From: Hyphochytrium catenoides
Lineage: Eukaryota > Protista > Hyphochytriomycota
Reading direction: 5' to 3'
DNA: 64,000 bases
Assembly: GCA_900088475.1 (NCBI GenBank)
Contig: FLMG01002043.1
Coordinates: 1 to 64,000, forward strand
The translations under genes were made by a program, and so were the position numbers. The notes beneath the pieces were generated by a model that was not told the origin of the DNA, ran no database searches, and saw only the letters and a program-made list of their open reading frames with translations. Positions 8,201 through 51,196 of the stretch are shown piece by piece (positions within the stretch are counted from its first letter, which is position 1; every line of letters starts with the position of its first letter).

Positions 8201-11200
8201 TTGGTCCTGCAGGCACTCTCCTTCTCTCCCTCTTCCTTTACCCCTCTCTCTATCCTCGCTCCCCTTTCTCTCTCCCTGCCCCCCATATCTTTCTTACTCT
8301 GTCTGCCTCTTTATTTCTCACTCTTCTGCTTTTTCTCCTCTCTCCCTTCAGCTCCGCCCTTTCTTTTTCCTTCTCTCCGTATGCTGGTCGCAGTCTCTCT
8401 CCATGTGTCCGTCAGAATCGTTGGTGCTATGACAGAATCTCTCTAGAGCTGGTTGTGCCTACCTGGAGATGCTGTCTCCTGCCCACTGCGGCTCCATTCC
8501 AGAGAAAGAGGAGGACCTGAAGAGTAGCTTCAAGTACCATTGGCTGGTCTACTATCAGAGCTCTTGAGTCCTTGAGAAGGGCAACGAAGATAGAAGAAAG
8601 AGACGGAGACGGATCGGACGCGGCAGATGGAGCCTGAAGAAGAACCCCCGCCAGTCCTACATGGCAGGAAAGAGAGACGAGCAAAAGGACCAGCAGTATT
8701 GGAGTGAGAACCTCACTTTGCAGGAATACAGCTCTGACCTTCTTTTAAGATAGGCATGACATCTCTGTTTCTTGTCCCATCTATCTTTATCCCTTGTTCT
8801 GGGCCTTACCTGGTTGATATTCAAGGGCCGCCTTCACTAGCGCTAAGGCAGCGGTCTTAAGGTGAGGAGACTCATCTCCTGGCTGCTGAAGGGCTCCCAC
8901 AACGGAGCGCCGCAGGGCTACGACGTTGAGAGACATGCGGGAGTTCAAGGAGAGAGGGGGAAGGGCAGACAGTGGGTCTGATTAGGAAAACAATTGGACA
9001 TACTTATAGCGGTTTCTGCACGAGAAAGGTCCTTCTACCCACCTTCTCCCTGGTCCTCTGAAGGGAAGAAAGCCATGACAGAGCTCTGATGCGGCAGCTC
9101 AGCGATGGGGCGCGAGGAGCCTGTCGCGCTATTCATATTGTCCAAGTTGGAGTCGTCCGTACGACTAGGTGGAGAGACTGAGGACTGCTCAGAGGAGCAG
9201 ATGCTTAGATAAACAAGGAGGCGAGTGGCGAGGATGGGTAGTGCTCTCCCTGAGGGCCTCTTATAGTCCAGGAAGGCTCTAACTATGGTCACCAAGTTGG
9301 CTCCATCTAAGAAGAAAGTGGAAGGAGAAGATGGAGGAGGAGTTTGAAGTGAAGAGTAAGAGGAAGCGGAGGAGAGAAAGACTGCCGACGTGGCTGACGC
9401 ATATGTTGAGACCTCTACCGTTGACGTGAGAAGGTCAGCCTTCTGTCTTGCCTTCCACGCCAGCTGAGAAGGAAGCAGCCGAGGATCCACTGGGGAGGCA
9501 CAGGAGAGTGGAGAAGATGGGGAAAACTCTTCTGAGAGCACGGCCGCTTCCAAAAGAAGGAGAGACTCAATGGCCATTAACTCAATGAGGTTGTACTCCA
9601 AGGCGCTTATACCGCGGAACAGGCCCCTCTCAAAGTCAACAAACCCTCTTTTCCCATAAGAAGACGAGGAGCCAAAGCGACCGCTGTCATTCTTCCGTCT
9701 CATGAGGTCAGAGAGAGTTAGCCCAGTCTGGGACGAGATAGATTCAGTGGTCTGAGCCCTAAAGAGTCCAGCTCCAGTAGACCCGGAGACCAGGACGACC
9801 AGGGGAGGATAGAGAGCCCGCTGCGTCACTCTGTCGTGAAGAAGCGCCTCTACAACGACAGCAAATTGATAAAGGTGAGGAGTCAGTAAGGCAAAGTAAG
9901 TGCCAGGTGGTAAGAAGAGAAGGACCGACGCCAACGTTTTTCGTGGACGGAGCTTATACCTATGACAATTCGCTTGCTCTCAAGTGCCACAGTGTCAACT
10001 AGGCCCAGGACGGAGTTGGTCTTAAGGTAGGGAAGAGGAGCCTGGGCCGGCGATGCAATCGAGCAGAGGATCAGACGACTACGGATTGACTCAGAGATGG
10101 AGATTGCGAAAGGCAAGATTGAGTGTGGTGGGCTCTAAGGAAGGATTGAAATCTTCCACCGACAGAACAAATGCAGTCAATGACCAGAGGAAGAGACAGA
10201 GACAGAGAGTGTAAGAGAGAGAGACAGAGAGTGTAAAAGAGAGAGAGCGAGAGAGAGAGAGAGAGGAAAAGGGAGAGCTGAAGTCGTGAGTAGCTTTCAA
10301 GTTTTACCTCTAGCACTTGGCGCAGAGCTCTAGTACACAGCGCACCAATCTTCCACCGCTGACTGCGACGAGAGTATCTCCAGCTGTCATGGGAGGACAG
10401 AACGGACAGAATGACGGACAGAATACGAAGCAAAGCAGGTTCCTCCCATCCCTTCCCAAGCGTAACCTCTCCAACCCTTATCAAGAACTGTAGAAGCATC
10501 TCGTCCTCTCTTTCTCCTTTGCTGGGAGGTGGAAGAGGGTGTTGCTCTCCTGCGGGTCCATGCTTTTGAGCACAGAAATAGAGCTCACACACTCTTTCCA
10601 CAAAGCGGCCAAAGTCGAGTAGAGTAAGGGGAGAGAGAGAAAGACCACTGGCAGGATGAGAGGAAGAAGGAACAGCAAAGTGCAAGAAGAGTCTTTCGAC
10701 TATTGGGAGAGAGAGGCCATATCCCAGCTGCTCTTGTAGAGCATTGACAAAGTCTTTCGCCTCTATCTGCCCACCTTGAAGAGGCATGCCGTCCTCTCTA
10801 CTACTCCCTCTTCCCGCGCTTCTCCCTTTGTGACGAAGAAATAAGCCCCGCAATCGCAGCGCCGGGTGCTGCTTCTGAAGAGAGGTGAGCAAGGAAATAG
10901 AAAGCTCCAAAAGAGAGAGGATCCCCTCATAATTGCCCGTGTGTATCTCGCGTGAATGCAAGAGAGAAAGTGACGCTTGGTAGAAAGAATGAAGAAGATC
11001 TCTTTCGCCTGCTCGTCCCCAAAGTGGTGATGGAGGTACTGCAAGAGAGTCATCCCGCTTCTCCAAGAGGTACAGCAACAGCCGTTTCCCAGTCTTTAGC
11101 CCTGCGACCGTGGAAAAGAGCTTTAGACAGCCCACAGAGATGTCCTGAAGAGTCGCTAGGACATTTTCCTTCTGTCGTTCTCGCCGACGTCTCAAGCCCT

Positions 11201-14200
11201 CCCAGTCACTGGAGAGTGGGCTTGAGTGAGAGAAGGAGGAAAGATTCGAGGTTTTATCTGCGGTTGCCTCGTGGCTCACCTCCTGGAGCAGCGCTGTAGA
11301 GTGAAGGAAAGTAGAAAGGACGCCTCGAAGTAGGTAGAGAATGCCGGTATCATCAACAGAAGAACAAAGAGAGGGTGATGAGCTCGAAGCGACAGACTTC
11401 TGCTTCCTCATCTTCTCACTGCTGAGGGCGGAAAGGAGACGTTCTCTCTCTGTCTCGGAAGTGACCCCAAGCTGCAGGAGATGCTCTTCTGTGACAGGAA
11501 GAGAAAGCAGGTGATCCAAAGTCACGCCTCCTTCCCAAAAGAAGGAGGAGAGGCGTTCCAGCTGATGAGATCTAAGCCAGTTAAGCAGTCTTTCCTCTTG
11601 AATGTGAGAGCCAAAGCGACAAAGAAAGTCGTCCCCTCCATCACCTCTCTCCTTCTCCCCGCCTACGGTCGCATAATAAAGAAGAGAGCCCAGAAGCTCC
11701 ACGCTGGACTTGCACTCCAGCAGCGTTTGCGAAAGATTATCCTCAATAGGAGAAAGAGACAGAGTCTTCAGTCTCTTCTGCCCGAACGAATGCGAGCGAT
11801 GAGAGGTAGAGGAGACACTGAGGAAGGAAACTAAGTCCTCTACGTTCACTTCCCATAGCCTTTGAAGGTTTTCCACGAGAATTGGCCACGCAGAGAGAGA
11901 ATATTCCCACTGGGCAACGGTGGCTCCTGTTTTTTCCACTCCGTAGAGAGCCGAAGAGCGGCGGGACAGAGGAGGAGAAAGTATTTTGCCTCTAGTTCCC
12001 CTCGGAAGCGAGATCCCCTCGGTAGTGTAGGTGTATCTGGAAGAGAGAGCAACCCCTGGAATGTCTGCCACATCAGGTCTCTCCTTATTCCGCTTGTCCT
12101 GTCCAGTAAAGGGAAGCATGGCCAGGAGAGGCTGAGGAGGCAGAGGAAGGGAGAGGAAGGATATCCCTCTTCCTCCTTCTCTTGCTCCAGCTAACCGCTC
12201 AAATACTCGCACTGCGCTCTCCATATCCCCAATTAAGGAAGAACAGAGCGTCGTGAGGGCCCAGGTTCGCCAGGGAAAGAAAGACAAAGAAAGAGAGATC
12301 ACTCCCTCAATGGCATCGGGTGTCTCTTCCTCAGTTTCCATTTTACTCCAGACGGTCGAACAGAGAGATGGAACGCCCTTCAATGCTGCAGAGAGGAGAG
12401 TAACAAAGACAACGACATCTTTTTCGGTCTGCGTCTGCTGTAAATAAGGAAGCGCAAGGAAGAGCGCATTGCTAAAGTCTCTCAGTATCCTCTTGGACAA
12501 GAAAAGGCCATAGAAGGTCCTTCGTGACACCACTTCCTCTCCGTGCAGCGCACTCTGAGGGATCTCGTCAAGCACTTGCAGAGGCAAAGAGGGAAAGTGG
12601 TCAATCTAAAAGCATCGAACACACCATCCCACGCCCTTCTGGACCCCGTTTCCATTACCCTTCTGGCAACCCTTACAATAGCTAGCCGCCCTCACGGTGT
12701 TAGTCAATGGACTTATACCTGTAGGAGAACTGGGCAAGTCACGTCCTGTTTGTCCGTCCCGATATTCTCCATAGTAGCCCACGTACGAGGTCCACGGCGT
12801 CGAGGTACCGGTCAGAGCGGGCTTTGGCAGATCAAAGAAAAGAGGCGCAAACGGATGATGAGCCACAGCGCTATGAATTGAGGGTAGATTTCGAAACCAG
12901 CAAAAGTGATGCAGAGGGCTTAAAGAGCGAAAGAGATTGCTAAGAAGGTGTCGAAAGGTAGCGGACCTCAAACCGCTTGTTCTCGCTCTCCATTGTTTGA
13001 GCCATAGAAAGAAGGAAAGCCATGGCCCCTAATTCATCTCCAAAGACAGAAGCCTGCGTGATGGTCTCCTCACTGCAAAGAGCAGAGAGTCGCGAGAGCA
13101 AGTCGTCCTCTCTCCCTCTCTGACTCATCCTGTCTAGCCCCTGTAGCTGCACTCGTAGGAGAGCAAGCATGCTTCCCCAGGCTTTAAGGAGAACAGCATG
13201 AGGAGGAGGCTCTGAATCTGCTCTTTCTTCGCTAAGGTACTTCCCAGGTCCCTTCCACGCTACTGCGGCTGTTCTCAGCTCCTCGTTAAAGAATTGATCG
13301 ATGGCTAAGAATTGTGACAGGCTCTGGTCCGTGAGTGTAGATGAGGAAGAAGGTAGCAAAAGCGGGTGGTAGATAGCTCTTTCTCCTGTTAGCTCTTTCG
13401 CTTCTTGACCGGTGAAGAAAGAGAAGCTGAGTCCCTGTAAGAGGACAAAGACCATACTCTGCGTCACTGCGCGGCACAGGTCAATCTTTCCATTTGGCAC
13501 CAGGAGAGAAAGCTTAGTCCTGCAGGGGCCAATAAGACAAGTTAGCATCCAGCCTATGGAAAGTAGATAAGAGCGACGTACCTTGAAGTGCCAAAGTCGA
13601 GTTTGGAGAATAACTCCAAAAGGCGGAAGAAAAAAGAAGGCGAGATATGTATCCTCTGCACCGTGAGAGCCTGCAGTAGCTGCAGCAAAAGATTCTCCTC
13701 TGAGACGCACTGCTGGGCCCACGCCACCTCGTGCCGATGATAGAAGTCCACCAGCTCTTCTCCCTCAACCTCCTTTCGTCCTGTTAACGCTTGGAGCTCG
13801 CATGAGAATGGAGAGTAGACGTTGGGAGCGTCGTTATCATAGAGTTCCTGAAGCTTTCCCAGCACTTCGGAGAGGACACTGCTCTCTTCTCCTGCTGTTC
13901 CATGGGTAGAATGATTGAGTATCTCATCCAAATATTCCTTTGCGAGGGAGTGGTAAGGATGCGACTCTCTCTTCTCATTGGCGATACGTAGTATCTCTAT
14001 GACAAGCTCTACAAGTGCTCTCCTCTCTCCATAGTAATAGTCACGGAGATCCTCAAACCATCCCAGTCCATCCCAAAAGCCTTCGTTAACCGTGGAAAGG
14101 CTGAGAGAGCTATGGAAATCTCGGAGAAAGTCCCTGAAGAGCTGGAAGGTTTGAATCTGTCCAACAACAGAGCAGAAGCGGAGCATCAGGATATGAGCTT

Positions 14201-15022
14201 TAAAAATTCAGCTGGAGCCATCAGCAGGTACTAATAGTGCTTAGCGGTGTAGCGACAGGCTAAAGAGCCAGCCCCGCTGTAGAGTTATGAGAGAGAGAAC
14301 GTGTCGAAGAGTTCGTCAAAAAAAGTATCAGATCCATGAGAAGCGTCAGACCTCATTCAGATGCAAAAGGCAGCTGGCCACCTTCACAAAGGCCCTTTCC
14401 TTGGGCCCTGAGATCTCAACCTTAGAGCTCTCAAGCTTACAAGAAGAAAAGAGAGACGTCAGAAGCACTTTTCGCTCCCCTTCGCAGGCTATCCTTTCTT
14501 TCTTCCTCTCAGAAATCATCCCCATACTCTCACATTCTCTCCCACATCCCTACCTCTTCCCTTTCTTCCCGTCGAGAAGCTCCTCTCTTTGCTCGTCTCC
14601 CCTTTCAACGCCGTCTTTCTTCCTCCGCTCCTATGCCCTCAAGAGTCACAGTTTACCTTATGGATCCGAGGCACCTGTTCCCCGTCAAGGACCTTTCTTG
14701 CAGCCTCAGAAGGCGCTTCGTAGAAGCTTAGAAAGTGCTTCAGCCTACCGGAGGGATCTAAAGAACGACAAACTTCAGTAAAGCAGAGCTACTCAGTCCC
14801 ACCCAGGGAGTCACCTAACCCGCGATACTTTCGTCTCTTGAGCCTTCATAACCCCGTGTTGTCTATCTCCCTCTCTTCGGCCAAATAACGTTCGAATGTC
14901 CGGTGTATCAATAGCTTACCACGGCGCAGCAAGTTGAAGAACTCTGCAGCGTCAGGCAGCAAGTCAGGAGTTCGCCTAAGGAGGGCCAGAATCACGCTGG
15001 AGGGCAATGAGAGCTCCTCCAT
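2273..15022 (-). CDS. NUP188: Nucleoporin Nup188-like scaffold protein, multi-exon, with inserted SAM and EF-hand-like modules
   Basis: Spliced exons give collinear Nup188 motifs: LSFYEAPSEAARKV (~14.7 kb; cf. LSYYKPPS), KVASCLLHLNE|IQTFQLF (intron 14157-14351), DYYYGERRALVELV...HPY (cf. DYYYEERTCILR...HPY), LPRGTRG...QWEYSLSAW (cf. IPQGTVG...RWEYSYSSW), EIHTGNYEG, and SHDSWRY...QRWKIG. Probable start MEELSLPSS at 15022, followed by a GTAAGC donor. The last exon reads ...EAVFGELLRCVQRL with TGA at 2275-2273. Exon boundaries in the 3' half are not all resolved. Confidence 0.88.
10190..10270. repeat. Intronic (AG/CT) microsatellite within the Nup188-like gene
   Basis: gagagagagacagagagtgta-type repeats; the track ORF reads through them as LSLSLSL, which is probably intron. 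Confidence 0.75.
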
Positions 15023-17369: not shown

Positions 17370-18353
17370 TTATGCCAAGGCTAGGTAGTAGGCACTAAAG
17401 GATACTGAGAGTAGAGTAAACGTACTGGTGAGGGATATAAAAGAAGTCCCTGAAGAAGCCTCTGCGGTACCGATCTTGCCGCCCACAACAGAAGGGGCAG
17501 TGGTGCGAACTGAAGGCTGATCCTGCTGCTCCCCAGAGGTAGTGGGCGTCACAGTGGTGGTAACAGGGACAGTAGTAGGGGCAGCAGTAGTAAGAGGAGG
17601 AGGCGTTGTGGTTGGAGCAGCGGTGGTAGGAAAGATAGCGTTCTTATCAGGAGTGCCTGTGAACCAGCTGCCATCGCCTAGACACTCAGCAACGGTGGCG
17701 AATGTTGCACCACGGCTCTTGAGGAAGTTGGTAACCTCGCCAAGGATGTCAATCGAAGGTTGATAGGTCTCATGCATAAGTGCGATCAATCCCTCCGGCA
17801 GCTGTGGCTGCGCCGCAAGGAAACCCTTGTACGCCTCCATTGTCGTAGCGGCACTCTTCCCAGGCTGCCAGTCATGAGTGTCCATATTCCAGTTGATAAC
17901 TTTCACACCGCCGTCTGCCAGGGGTTGCAGCTCATGCGGAGTGTTACAGTTGCCGTACGGGCAGCGAAAGTATGTTGGAGCAATGCCAAGGATCTTCTTA
18001 AACTCCGCATTGGTCTGTTGCACTTCTTCCTGTAAGATTTGATTGTAGCTAAGAGTGGGAAGCTGCTCATGATTGTAAGAATGGGAGGCCAGCTGATGGC
18101 CCTCTCTGAAAGCACGTTTGACAGCATCAGAATATTGCTGTAGATTTTTTCCTAACCAGAAGAAAGTGAGGGGTATGTTCAGCTTCTTAGCTTGGTCAAG
18201 AAGCTCTTCCGTGTTTTCTGAAGGTCCATCATCATATGTGAGTGCGACAACACCCGGCTTCTGGCAATGGTAGATTTGGGAGAGCCCCTGGGTTGGCACC
18301 GCTAGTTCCGTGCTCAAAAGAAGTGCGGCCAGGCCCAGAACGCTTGGCAGCAT
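17370..18353 (-). CDS. Secreted, probably GPI-anchored polysaccharide (chitin) deacetylase, CE4/NodB family; intronless
   Basis: Signal peptide; all five CE4 motifs (TYDDGP, HSYNH, RCPYG, DTHDW, LMHE); fungal-CDA-like ends CQKPGVVALTYDDGP and TVAECLGD; Thr/Pro-rich stalk; hydrophobic C-terminal tail after ASSG. Confidence 0.95.
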   Translation of the reverse strand: MLPSVLGLAALLLSTELAVPTQGLSQIYHCQKPGVVALTYDDGPSENTEELLDQAKKLNIPLTFFWLGKNLQQYSDAVKRAFREGHQLASHSYNHEQLPTLSYNQILQEEVQQTNAEFKKILGIAPTYFRCPYGNCNTPHELQPLADGGVKVINWNMDTHDWQPGKSAATTMEAYKGFLAAQPQLPEGLIALMHETYQPSIDILGEVTNFLKSRGATFATVAECLGDGSWFTGTPDKNAIFPTTAAPTTTPPPLTTAAPTTVPVTTTVTPTTSGEQQDQPSVRTTAPSVVGGKIGTAEASSGTSFISLTSTFTLLSVSFSAYYLALA

Positions 18354-50032: not shown

Positions 50033-51196
50033 ATGGGTCTGGGTTTATTGCTCAGTGTTCTCCTGCTTCAATATGCAACGACCGCAGTTCTACTCTACAT
50101 TCCTTTGACGGAGGCTTCTCCGACTCCCCTCGGTTCGCAGCCCCTGCCGGGATGGTTACCGTCTCGCCCCCCTGGCAAAAACATGATCATCCACAATAAT
50201 TGCCCCTTCAACATCTGGCCAGCTTATGTCGGGACTGATGAGAGAACGGGAACTCCGGTCTGGGGGCGCGCAGATTCCGCAAATCCCGCGGGAAACACCA
50301 TTCCAATGCCTTCCGGAGCTTACAAGGTAGTCCCCGTTTACAATGGCGCGGTCGCTGTGCGCGTGTGGGCACGAACGGGGTGCAAGAGAGAGTCCGACGG
50401 ACGGTTTGTTTGCGCCATCGGTGACTGCGGGAATGCAGAGAATAATTTTGATGGTAGCTGCTATAGAAGTTCTGGGAAGGGTGCCATTTCTCTCGCGGAG
50501 TTCTCGTTTACAGCTAACAATGGGAACACATTCTACGACTTGAGCTTGGTCGATGGATATACCGTTCCTATCTCCATCACGCTAGTAGGAACTGCCATTG
50601 ACACTCCTGGTAGTGCGCCAGACTTCAGCTGCGGAAATCCATTTTGCCGACCAGACCAGTCATTCAGTCAGTGTCCACCAGAGCTAAAGAAGAGAGACGC
50701 TACCGGAAAGGTTATTGGCTGCTTTAATATCCACGCCGCTGCAGCTGATGAGGAATTGAGAGCTGGCGCTACTTATGGCGCCTATCTGACCAAAATATGG
50801 ACCGACGCCGAGCTGTGGTCCAGAACCGCCTGCGACGCCCTTACCGGAGACTGCGGCGGCAACAACGTCCAGGAGACTCTTTATAGCGGAAACCACATCA
50901 AGCGCGGAACATACCTTGCACGTGAAGGAGGGAACCGGACGGGATATGCGTGCTCGCCATTCATCGACTGGATGGCACCTTATAAGGACGAGTTCGATCC
51001 TTTCATCTGCTATGATGAGCGTAAGCCTAAGCCCCTGAATGGCTTCGGCAGAGATTGGGGGATCGGCGCGTCGCCTTCGTATGCTCAGCTCTTCAAAAAA
51101 ATCTGTCCGCTGGCTTACAGCTGGCAGTTTAACGACGGCGAAAGCACCTTCCAGTGTATGGGCGATGATCTGAGTTACATCATTGACTTCTGCTAA
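50033..51196 (+). CDS. Secreted thaumatin-like protein (PR-5/GH152 family); intronless
   Basis: Signal peptide; NNCPFNIWPA, RVWARTGC, C..GDCG, SLAEFSF, FYDLSLVDGYTVPISI and YAQLFKKICPLAYSWQFND..STFQC...YIIDFC. Confidence 0.95.
   Translation: MGLGLLLSVLLLQYATTAVLLYIPLTEASPTPLGSQPLPGWLPSRPPGKNMIIHNNCPFNIWPAYVGTDERTGTPVWGRADSANPAGNTIPMPSGAYKVVPVYNGAVAVRVWARTGCKRESDGRFVCAIGDCGNAENNFDGSCYRSSGKGAISLAEFSFTANNGNTFYDLSLVDGYTVPISITLVGTAIDTPGSAPDFSCGNPFCRPDQSFSQCPPELKKRDATGKVIGCFNIHAAAADEELRAGATYGAYLTKIWTDAELWSRTACDALTGDCGGNNVQETLYSGNHIKRGTYLAREGGNRTGYACSPFIDWMAPYKDEFDPFICYDERKPKPLNGFGRDWGIGASPSYAQLFKKICPLAYSWQFNDGESTFQCMGDDLSYIIDFC

Follow-up and report, generated by a model that had tools for sequence, protein, structure and literature searches.

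Gene structure at the locus

The window analysed here is a stretch of 64,000 nucleotides from Hyphochytrium catenoides (contig FLMG01002043.1, positions 1 to 64,000), and its subject is a sterile alpha motif (SAM) domain predicted inside a gene for the nucleoporin Nup188. Nup188 has been viewed as a simple helical scaffold with a single addition, an SH3-like insert whose role is unknown. The gene lies on the minus strand, to which all window coordinates refer unless otherwise indicated, and extends from about 14800 to past 9000. An earlier note on this DNA had claimed that a SAM-like peptide lies in frame in one long exon of a Nup188-like gene, between the motifs QWEYSLSAW and EIHTGNYEG. The quoted peptide is indeed the exact translation of positions 11421-11594 on the minus strand (the plus-strand translation of the same interval is nonsense and was rejected), and it is surrounded by a stop-free frame of 844 codons (10074-12605). 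Both motifs belong to this frame too (QWEYSLSAWP, 11883-11912; EIHTGNYEG, 10923-10949), so that the claimed arrangement was recovered.

Within this frame, the exon that bears the SAM domain is best delimited to 10308-12605, that is, 766 continuous codons. Its acceptor (ttttag) stands immediately upstream of 12605 and its donor (GAG/gtaaaa) is found at 10307. In N- to C-terminal order, the exon encodes a putative SH3-like region, the SAM domain, a degenerate EF-hand pair and the start of a match to the Pfam Nup188 N-terminal subdomain III. The intron that follows (10074-10307) contains a long tract rich in CT dinucleotides which is open in frame and resembles a Leu/Ser-rich tail. A plausible GT-AG intron across the SAM segment was looked for in the SAM-bearing exon, and no donor/acceptor pair with a credible consensus was found. 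The sole strong internal donor, at 11279, was rejected as the start of an intron: its only good acceptor, 71 nucleotides away, would break the frame. From the sequence, the SAM segment thus appears to be exonic; Nup188-like sequence flanks it on either side and shares its frame across the 766 codons.

Upstream of this exon, the N-terminal Nup188 exon is contained in an open-frame block at 13557-14207, which includes a YYxER...HPY motif and a match to Nup188_N, and the next open-frame block (12943-13519, approximate boundaries) is a stop-free frame corresponding to a helical exon. A GTACGT donor near 13582 and a CAG acceptor near 13520 define a 63-nucleotide GT-AG intron with a CTAAC branch motif; the introns of this gene are characteristically short, with donors of the GTACGT type and the same branch motif. 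Downstream, a stop-free helical frame of 314 codons (9038-9979) probably corresponds to the next exon or exons, and Pfam and PDB searches with it gave no match.

Identity of the host protein

The database searches were run exon by exon. The N-terminal block 13557-14207 matched the Pfam family Nup188_N with 13.6 bits (cut-off 22.4, E = 0.033), and the best PDB match of this frame was human NUP188, residues 86-187. When a two-sequence profile was built from the N-terminal piece and its orthologue on a Logan contig (L002, see below), human NUP188 (E = 0.0099) and Xenopus Nup188 came first, and the alignment passed through the YYxER..HPY motif. The region from a PRGTRG motif to WEYSLSAWP (11883-12008) would correspond to the Nup188-specific SH3-like region. 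A profile of the pre-SAM region made from the window and the relative's protein P0001 had a single PDB match, to residues 505-565 of 9sob_B (E = 0.0043), a 1965-residue protein annotated as 'Nucleoporin (DUF3414)' that has the TRGR and WEYSLS motifs in common with the window. The Pfam SH3-like model of Nup188 itself produced a weak match, in the segment of the L002 orthologue only (12.8 bits, cut-off 21.4, E = 0.1). The SH3-like insert has been described as specific to Nup188, absent from Nup192 and located inside subdomain III (PMC3679522). At the end of the exon, positions 10299-10433 matched the Pfam Nup188 N-terminal subdomain III (profile positions 177-221; 21.3 bits, cut-off 24.3, E = 1.5e-4), and this is the sole such match in the whole genome. 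A language-model search with the 316 residues that precede the SAM domain also pointed to this family, as its ten best named matches were all Nup188/Nup192 clusters (scores 0.95-0.88).

The paralogous Nup192/205 is encoded by a separate gene on another contig of the genome (C4479, 124657-132753), made up of four or more exon blocks that score up to 150 bits as Nup192; in PDB searches it matches Xenopus and human NUP205, as well as chain C16 ('NUP205') of entry 9sob. Since that gene matches the NUP205 chain of the same entry, 9sob_B can be taken as the NUP188 paralogue. The molecule names in 9sob suggest that it is a plant entry, and At4g38760 has been reported as the Arabidopsis NUP188 homologue (PMC6006428). 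The Nup188 gene is far less well conserved than this Nup192/205 orthologue. It is single-copy. Whole-genome Pfam Nup188 scans revealed no other candidate, and those with Nup188_N, Nup188_C and the SH3-like model provided no usable match. PDB searches with the downstream frames and two short profiles returned nothing relevant. A Pfam Ariadne match at 11598-11888, where helices connect the SH3-like region with the SAM domain, lies slightly above its cut-off (23.9 versus 23.5 bits) and was set aside as probably a chance helical match. Taken together, the concordant but individually weak matches, which occur in the right N-to-C order, indicate that the host protein is the Nup188 paralogue, in agreement with the Nup188-like host that the earlier note had proposed.

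The SAM domain

The SAM domain (11421-11597) is separated by about 95 residues from the putative SH3-like insert that precedes it, and by about 190 residues from the EF-hand pair downstream. The 78-residue segment alone was recognised by both Pfam models of the family, SAM_1 (PF00536; 30.6 bits, cut-off 23, E = 4.6e-7) and SAM_2 (PF07647; 29.3 bits, cut-off 20.5). Among the 16 SAM_1 matches obtained when all six frames of the 61-Mb genome were scanned, it ranked seventh (29.9 bits, E = 4e-5). Its identity to eight SAM paralogues from the same genome, aligned over the whole length, is 19-27%, and it is hence no recent copy of any of them. The hidden Markov model (HMM) searches thus agree with the SAM assignment made in the earlier note; in the same searches the Nup188 models remained below threshold, though concordant and in order.

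An AlphaFold2 model built with an alignment of the SAM paralogues reached a mean predicted local distance difference test (pLDDT) of 86.9 and a predicted template modelling score of 0.70, with five helices at residues 4-19, 23-32, 36-41, 46-52 and 57-76, which corresponds to the expected five-helix bundle. When this model was compared with the PDB using Foldseek, the best 50 matches were all SAM domains (probability 1.00, target TM about 0.8, root-mean-square deviation 1.2-1.5 Å), including those of tankyrase, ANKS3/6, Eph receptors, BICC1, SARM1 and CASKIN, with 21-33% identity. Judging from the HMM scores and the predicted fold, the SAM domain in this Nup188 is genuine.

The domain is flanked by a Gly/acidic linker on its N-terminal side (11628-11663) and by a Ser/Lys-rich linker on its C-terminal side (11349-11423). 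Both were recognised by composition and lack helices in the single-sequence model, where the former has low confidence and the latter a pLDDT below 50. Predicted linkers of this kind on both sides are what is usually seen when a globular insert is attached to a repeat protein by tethers. The SAM domain is net acidic (9 D/E versus 5 K/R, isoelectric point 5.2), and by a rough test that takes into account charge and isoelectric point only, it does not have the electropositive surface typical of the RNA-binding SAM domains of Smaug and Vts1. A prediction of a two-copy SAM complex gave no answer (score 0.01) and is evidence neither for nor against self-association.

Conservation in a distant relative and the EF-hand pair

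An exhaustive HMMER search of 1.84 billion representative sequences found one related protein, P0001 (295 residues, 30% identical, E = 1e-7). Neither the 838-residue frame nor a two-sequence profile recovered anything beyond P0001 in word-index protein searches, although the length band of these searches excludes full-length Nup188 proteins and the blanks say little. Two metagenome locus scans did not recover any relative. P0001 is encoded on L002, a 15-kb Logan contig with 58% G+C whose end falls inside the gene. The window and L002 share two collinear matches (E = 6e-7 and 2e-13). No counterpart of the FAD-binding gene that neighbours the L002 homologue was found in the genome of H. catenoides.

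In L002, the exon at 10893-11008, directly after the one that ends in SAWP, has a partial SAM_2 match (E = 0.016) and is 34% identical to the first half of the window SAM domain. When an HMM made from only the other SAM domains of the H. catenoides genome was run against L002, this slot was the single best of 334 six-frame pieces (E = 0.0046, versus 2.6 for the next one). The exon is followed by a 72-nucleotide GT-AG intron (11009-11080, as read) and then by a segment that resembles helices 4 and 5. This intron and a second one of 84 nucleotides (11750-11833) are both multiples of three and stop-free, and a prokaryote-style gene caller read through them.

A second insert accompanies the SAM domain in both sequences. 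In L002, a shared G.Y motif is followed by a canonical EF-hand pair (11669-11956; EF-hand_1, E = 2e-13; EF-hand_7, E = 8e-12). The pair is split by the 84-nucleotide intron, whose removal restores the standard loop-to-loop spacing of 36 residues. From its sequence, the L002 pair is probably calcium-binding. A predicted calcium-binding Nup188 is notable in its own right. In the window, the counterpart of the G.Y region is the EIHTGNYEG motif (RGHGRYPAT in L002), and just after it, at 10575-10859, lies a degenerate pair that occupies the same position as the L002 one: its helices are in the corresponding place, its loops are expanded and the acidic ligands for calcium are missing. A Pfam EF-hand search on this interval gave no match, and the search of the whole exon against the Atlas recovered only weak EF-hand clusters of the RyR/IP3R type (score 0.79).

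Since both inserts occupy the same positions in a relative that is only about 30% identical, the SAM domain and the EF-hand pair appear to predate the split of the two organisms and to have been kept as coding sequence. The SAM insert is thus old and conserved rather than private to this genome. This adds to the idea of a lineage-specific graft onto Nup188 put forward in the earlier note: the presence of the SAM domain inside the Nup188 gene stood up, and L002 has a SAM-like segment at the same place.

Comparison with known systems

The Nup188 proteins of fungi, animals and plants (PDB 4KF7/4KF8, 5IJO chain J, 7WKK chain B and 9SOB chain B) are large alpha-solenoid scaffolds of the inner ring that bind Nic96/Nup93 and linker nucleoporins, and the window gene appears to be of the same type. 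They have in common the YYxER..HPY motif, the TRG and WEYSLS motifs of the SH3-like insert and the subdomain III match, in the same order, together with a separate Nup192/205 paralogue. Unlike them, the window Nup188 would also hold a SAM domain and an EF-hand pair in subdomain III, and its identity to the known proteins is too low for the Pfam cut-offs. The published fungal Nup188 structure consists of helical repeats and the SH3-like insert only (PMC3679522). When the whole exon was searched against PDB sequences, the SAM segment was matched by free-standing SAM domains only, and no Nup188 chain was among the matches. No SAM domain or EF-hand is listed among the common families of the Atlas Nup188 clusters, and nothing relevant linking Nup188 to a SAM domain or an EF-hand came up in full-text literature searches. 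As far as sequence searches and the literature show, the solved Nup188 proteins of human, Xenopus, plants and fungi have no SAM domain; the earlier note had claimed this for those of yeast and human.

The SAM domains of tankyrase, ANKS3/ANKS6, Eph receptors, BICC1 and SARM1 share the five-helix fold predicted here. Such protein-binding or polymerising SAM domains are found at the termini of signalling proteins or between their domains, whereas the window SAM would be an internal insert in a pore scaffold. SAM domains can form homo- or hetero-oligomers by way of their mid-loop and end-helix surfaces. In STIM1 and STIM2, too, a single polypeptide bears an EF-hand pair together with a SAM domain, and the L002 loops are canonical. 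Nevertheless, in the STIM-type EF-SAM unit the EF-hand pair is directly N-terminal to the SAM domain, packed on it, and has a working calcium loop. In the window, the SAM domain comes before the EF-hand pair, about 190 residues of helical repeat separate them, the loops are degenerate and the protein would be located in the cytosolic/nuclear pore instead of the lumen of the endoplasmic reticulum.

Other features of the window

The window also contains a polysaccharide (chitin) deacetylase gene (17370-18353, minus strand) and a thaumatin-family gene (50033-51196, plus strand), each as a single long open frame. A run of N near the start of the window (about 230-290) corresponds to an assembly gap.

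Discussion

Several scenarios may explain these observations. The one that we consider likely is that the gene is a single-copy Nup188 orthologue, from a stramenopile near the oomycetes, that carries a complete SAM domain on linkers and a degenerate EF-hand pair, and that the SAM domain acts as a docking or oligomerisation module. The SAM domain would then be a surface knob tethered to the Nup188 solenoid, for which protein-protein docking or oligomerisation is the most likely function to be inferred. Its partner could be the SAM domain of another Nup188 molecule or a different SAM protein of the same cell, and the result would be a lineage-specific contact added to the inner-ring scaffold.

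Some observations weigh against this scenario. The AlphaFold2 model of the SAM domain and its flanks from the single sequence has a pLDDT of 45, though its five helices are in the right span. The alignment of paralogues biases the better model toward the fold of the family, which makes the predicted fold consistent with a SAM domain but no independent proof of it. Conservation was seen in one relative only, and there the sequence supports the first half of the SAM domain, while the second half depends on the reading of the 72-nucleotide intron. As for the host, all of the Nup188 Pfam matches are below the curated cut-offs, the Nup188 signals are individually weak (E from 0.01 to 0.0002) and no Nup188 C-terminal domain was found, either with Pfam Nup188_C or in PDB searches with the downstream frames. 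These sub-threshold scores and the lack of any match in the C-terminal half might also be expected if the host were another alpha-solenoid protein, the Nup188 signals being due to chance or to a shared helical-repeat composition. Yet, four independent segments or methods indicate Nup188 in the right N-to-C order, the motifs YYxER..HPY, TRGR and WEYSLS are specific, the Nup192/205 paralogue is located elsewhere and the genome scans revealed no further Nup188 candidate, all of which makes a different solenoid very improbable. It could also be proposed that the SAM segment is not part of the mature Nup188, either because it is spliced out or because it is restricted to an alternative isoform. In this lineage an open frame alone is no proof of an exon, because L002 has short in-frame introns (72 and 84 nucleotides) that are free of stops. 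Nevertheless, no credible donor/acceptor pair spans the segment, the domain is complete and in frame with both flanks, and L002, whose introns lie at other positions, retains the homologous segment in the same slot; the removal of the SAM domain from the protein thus seems hardly probable.

If the SAM domain is accepted as part of the protein, its role may be interpreted in other ways than docking or oligomerisation. Some SAM domains bind RNA hairpins, and a location at the pore would suit the handling of mRNA. These points speak for a Smaug/Vts1-type module that holds transcripts or ribonucleoproteins at the pore, but the window SAM is probably not an RNA binder, since it is acidic, and the structures closest to it are those of SAM domains that bind proteins or polymerise, so that we give little credence to this possibility. 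Alternatively, the SAM domain and the EF-hand pair could form a calcium-responsive unit that loosely resembles the EF-SAM of STIM, in which the EF-hands would clamp the SAM domain and free it for self-association when calcium changes. Both modules would jointly tune the inner-ring contacts, the scaffold would be responsive to calcium where the loops are canonical and the H. catenoides genome would encode a calcium-blind derivative. The co-occurrence of both inserts at fixed positions in the two species, the flexible linkers on which both of them sit, and the canonical L002 loops with their standard spacing after splicing are congruent with this idea. The reversed order with respect to STIM and the long helical stretch between the modules speak against it, and the persistence of the SAM domain next to degenerate loops in the window suggests that it is independent of calcium binding. 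Such a calcium-responsive unit, as well as the joint tuning of the inner ring that would follow from it, is accordingly considered unlikely, and docking or oligomerisation by the SAM domain itself is favored.

The conservation of a SAM domain and an EF-hand pair, the latter canonical in L002, in the ring domain of Nup188 would mean that the pore scaffolds of some protists gained interaction modules of the signalling type. These proteins may offer a handle on the ways in which a lineage can add contacts to the inner ring or regulate them, and on the old and unsettled question of whether calcium acts directly on the pore scaffold.

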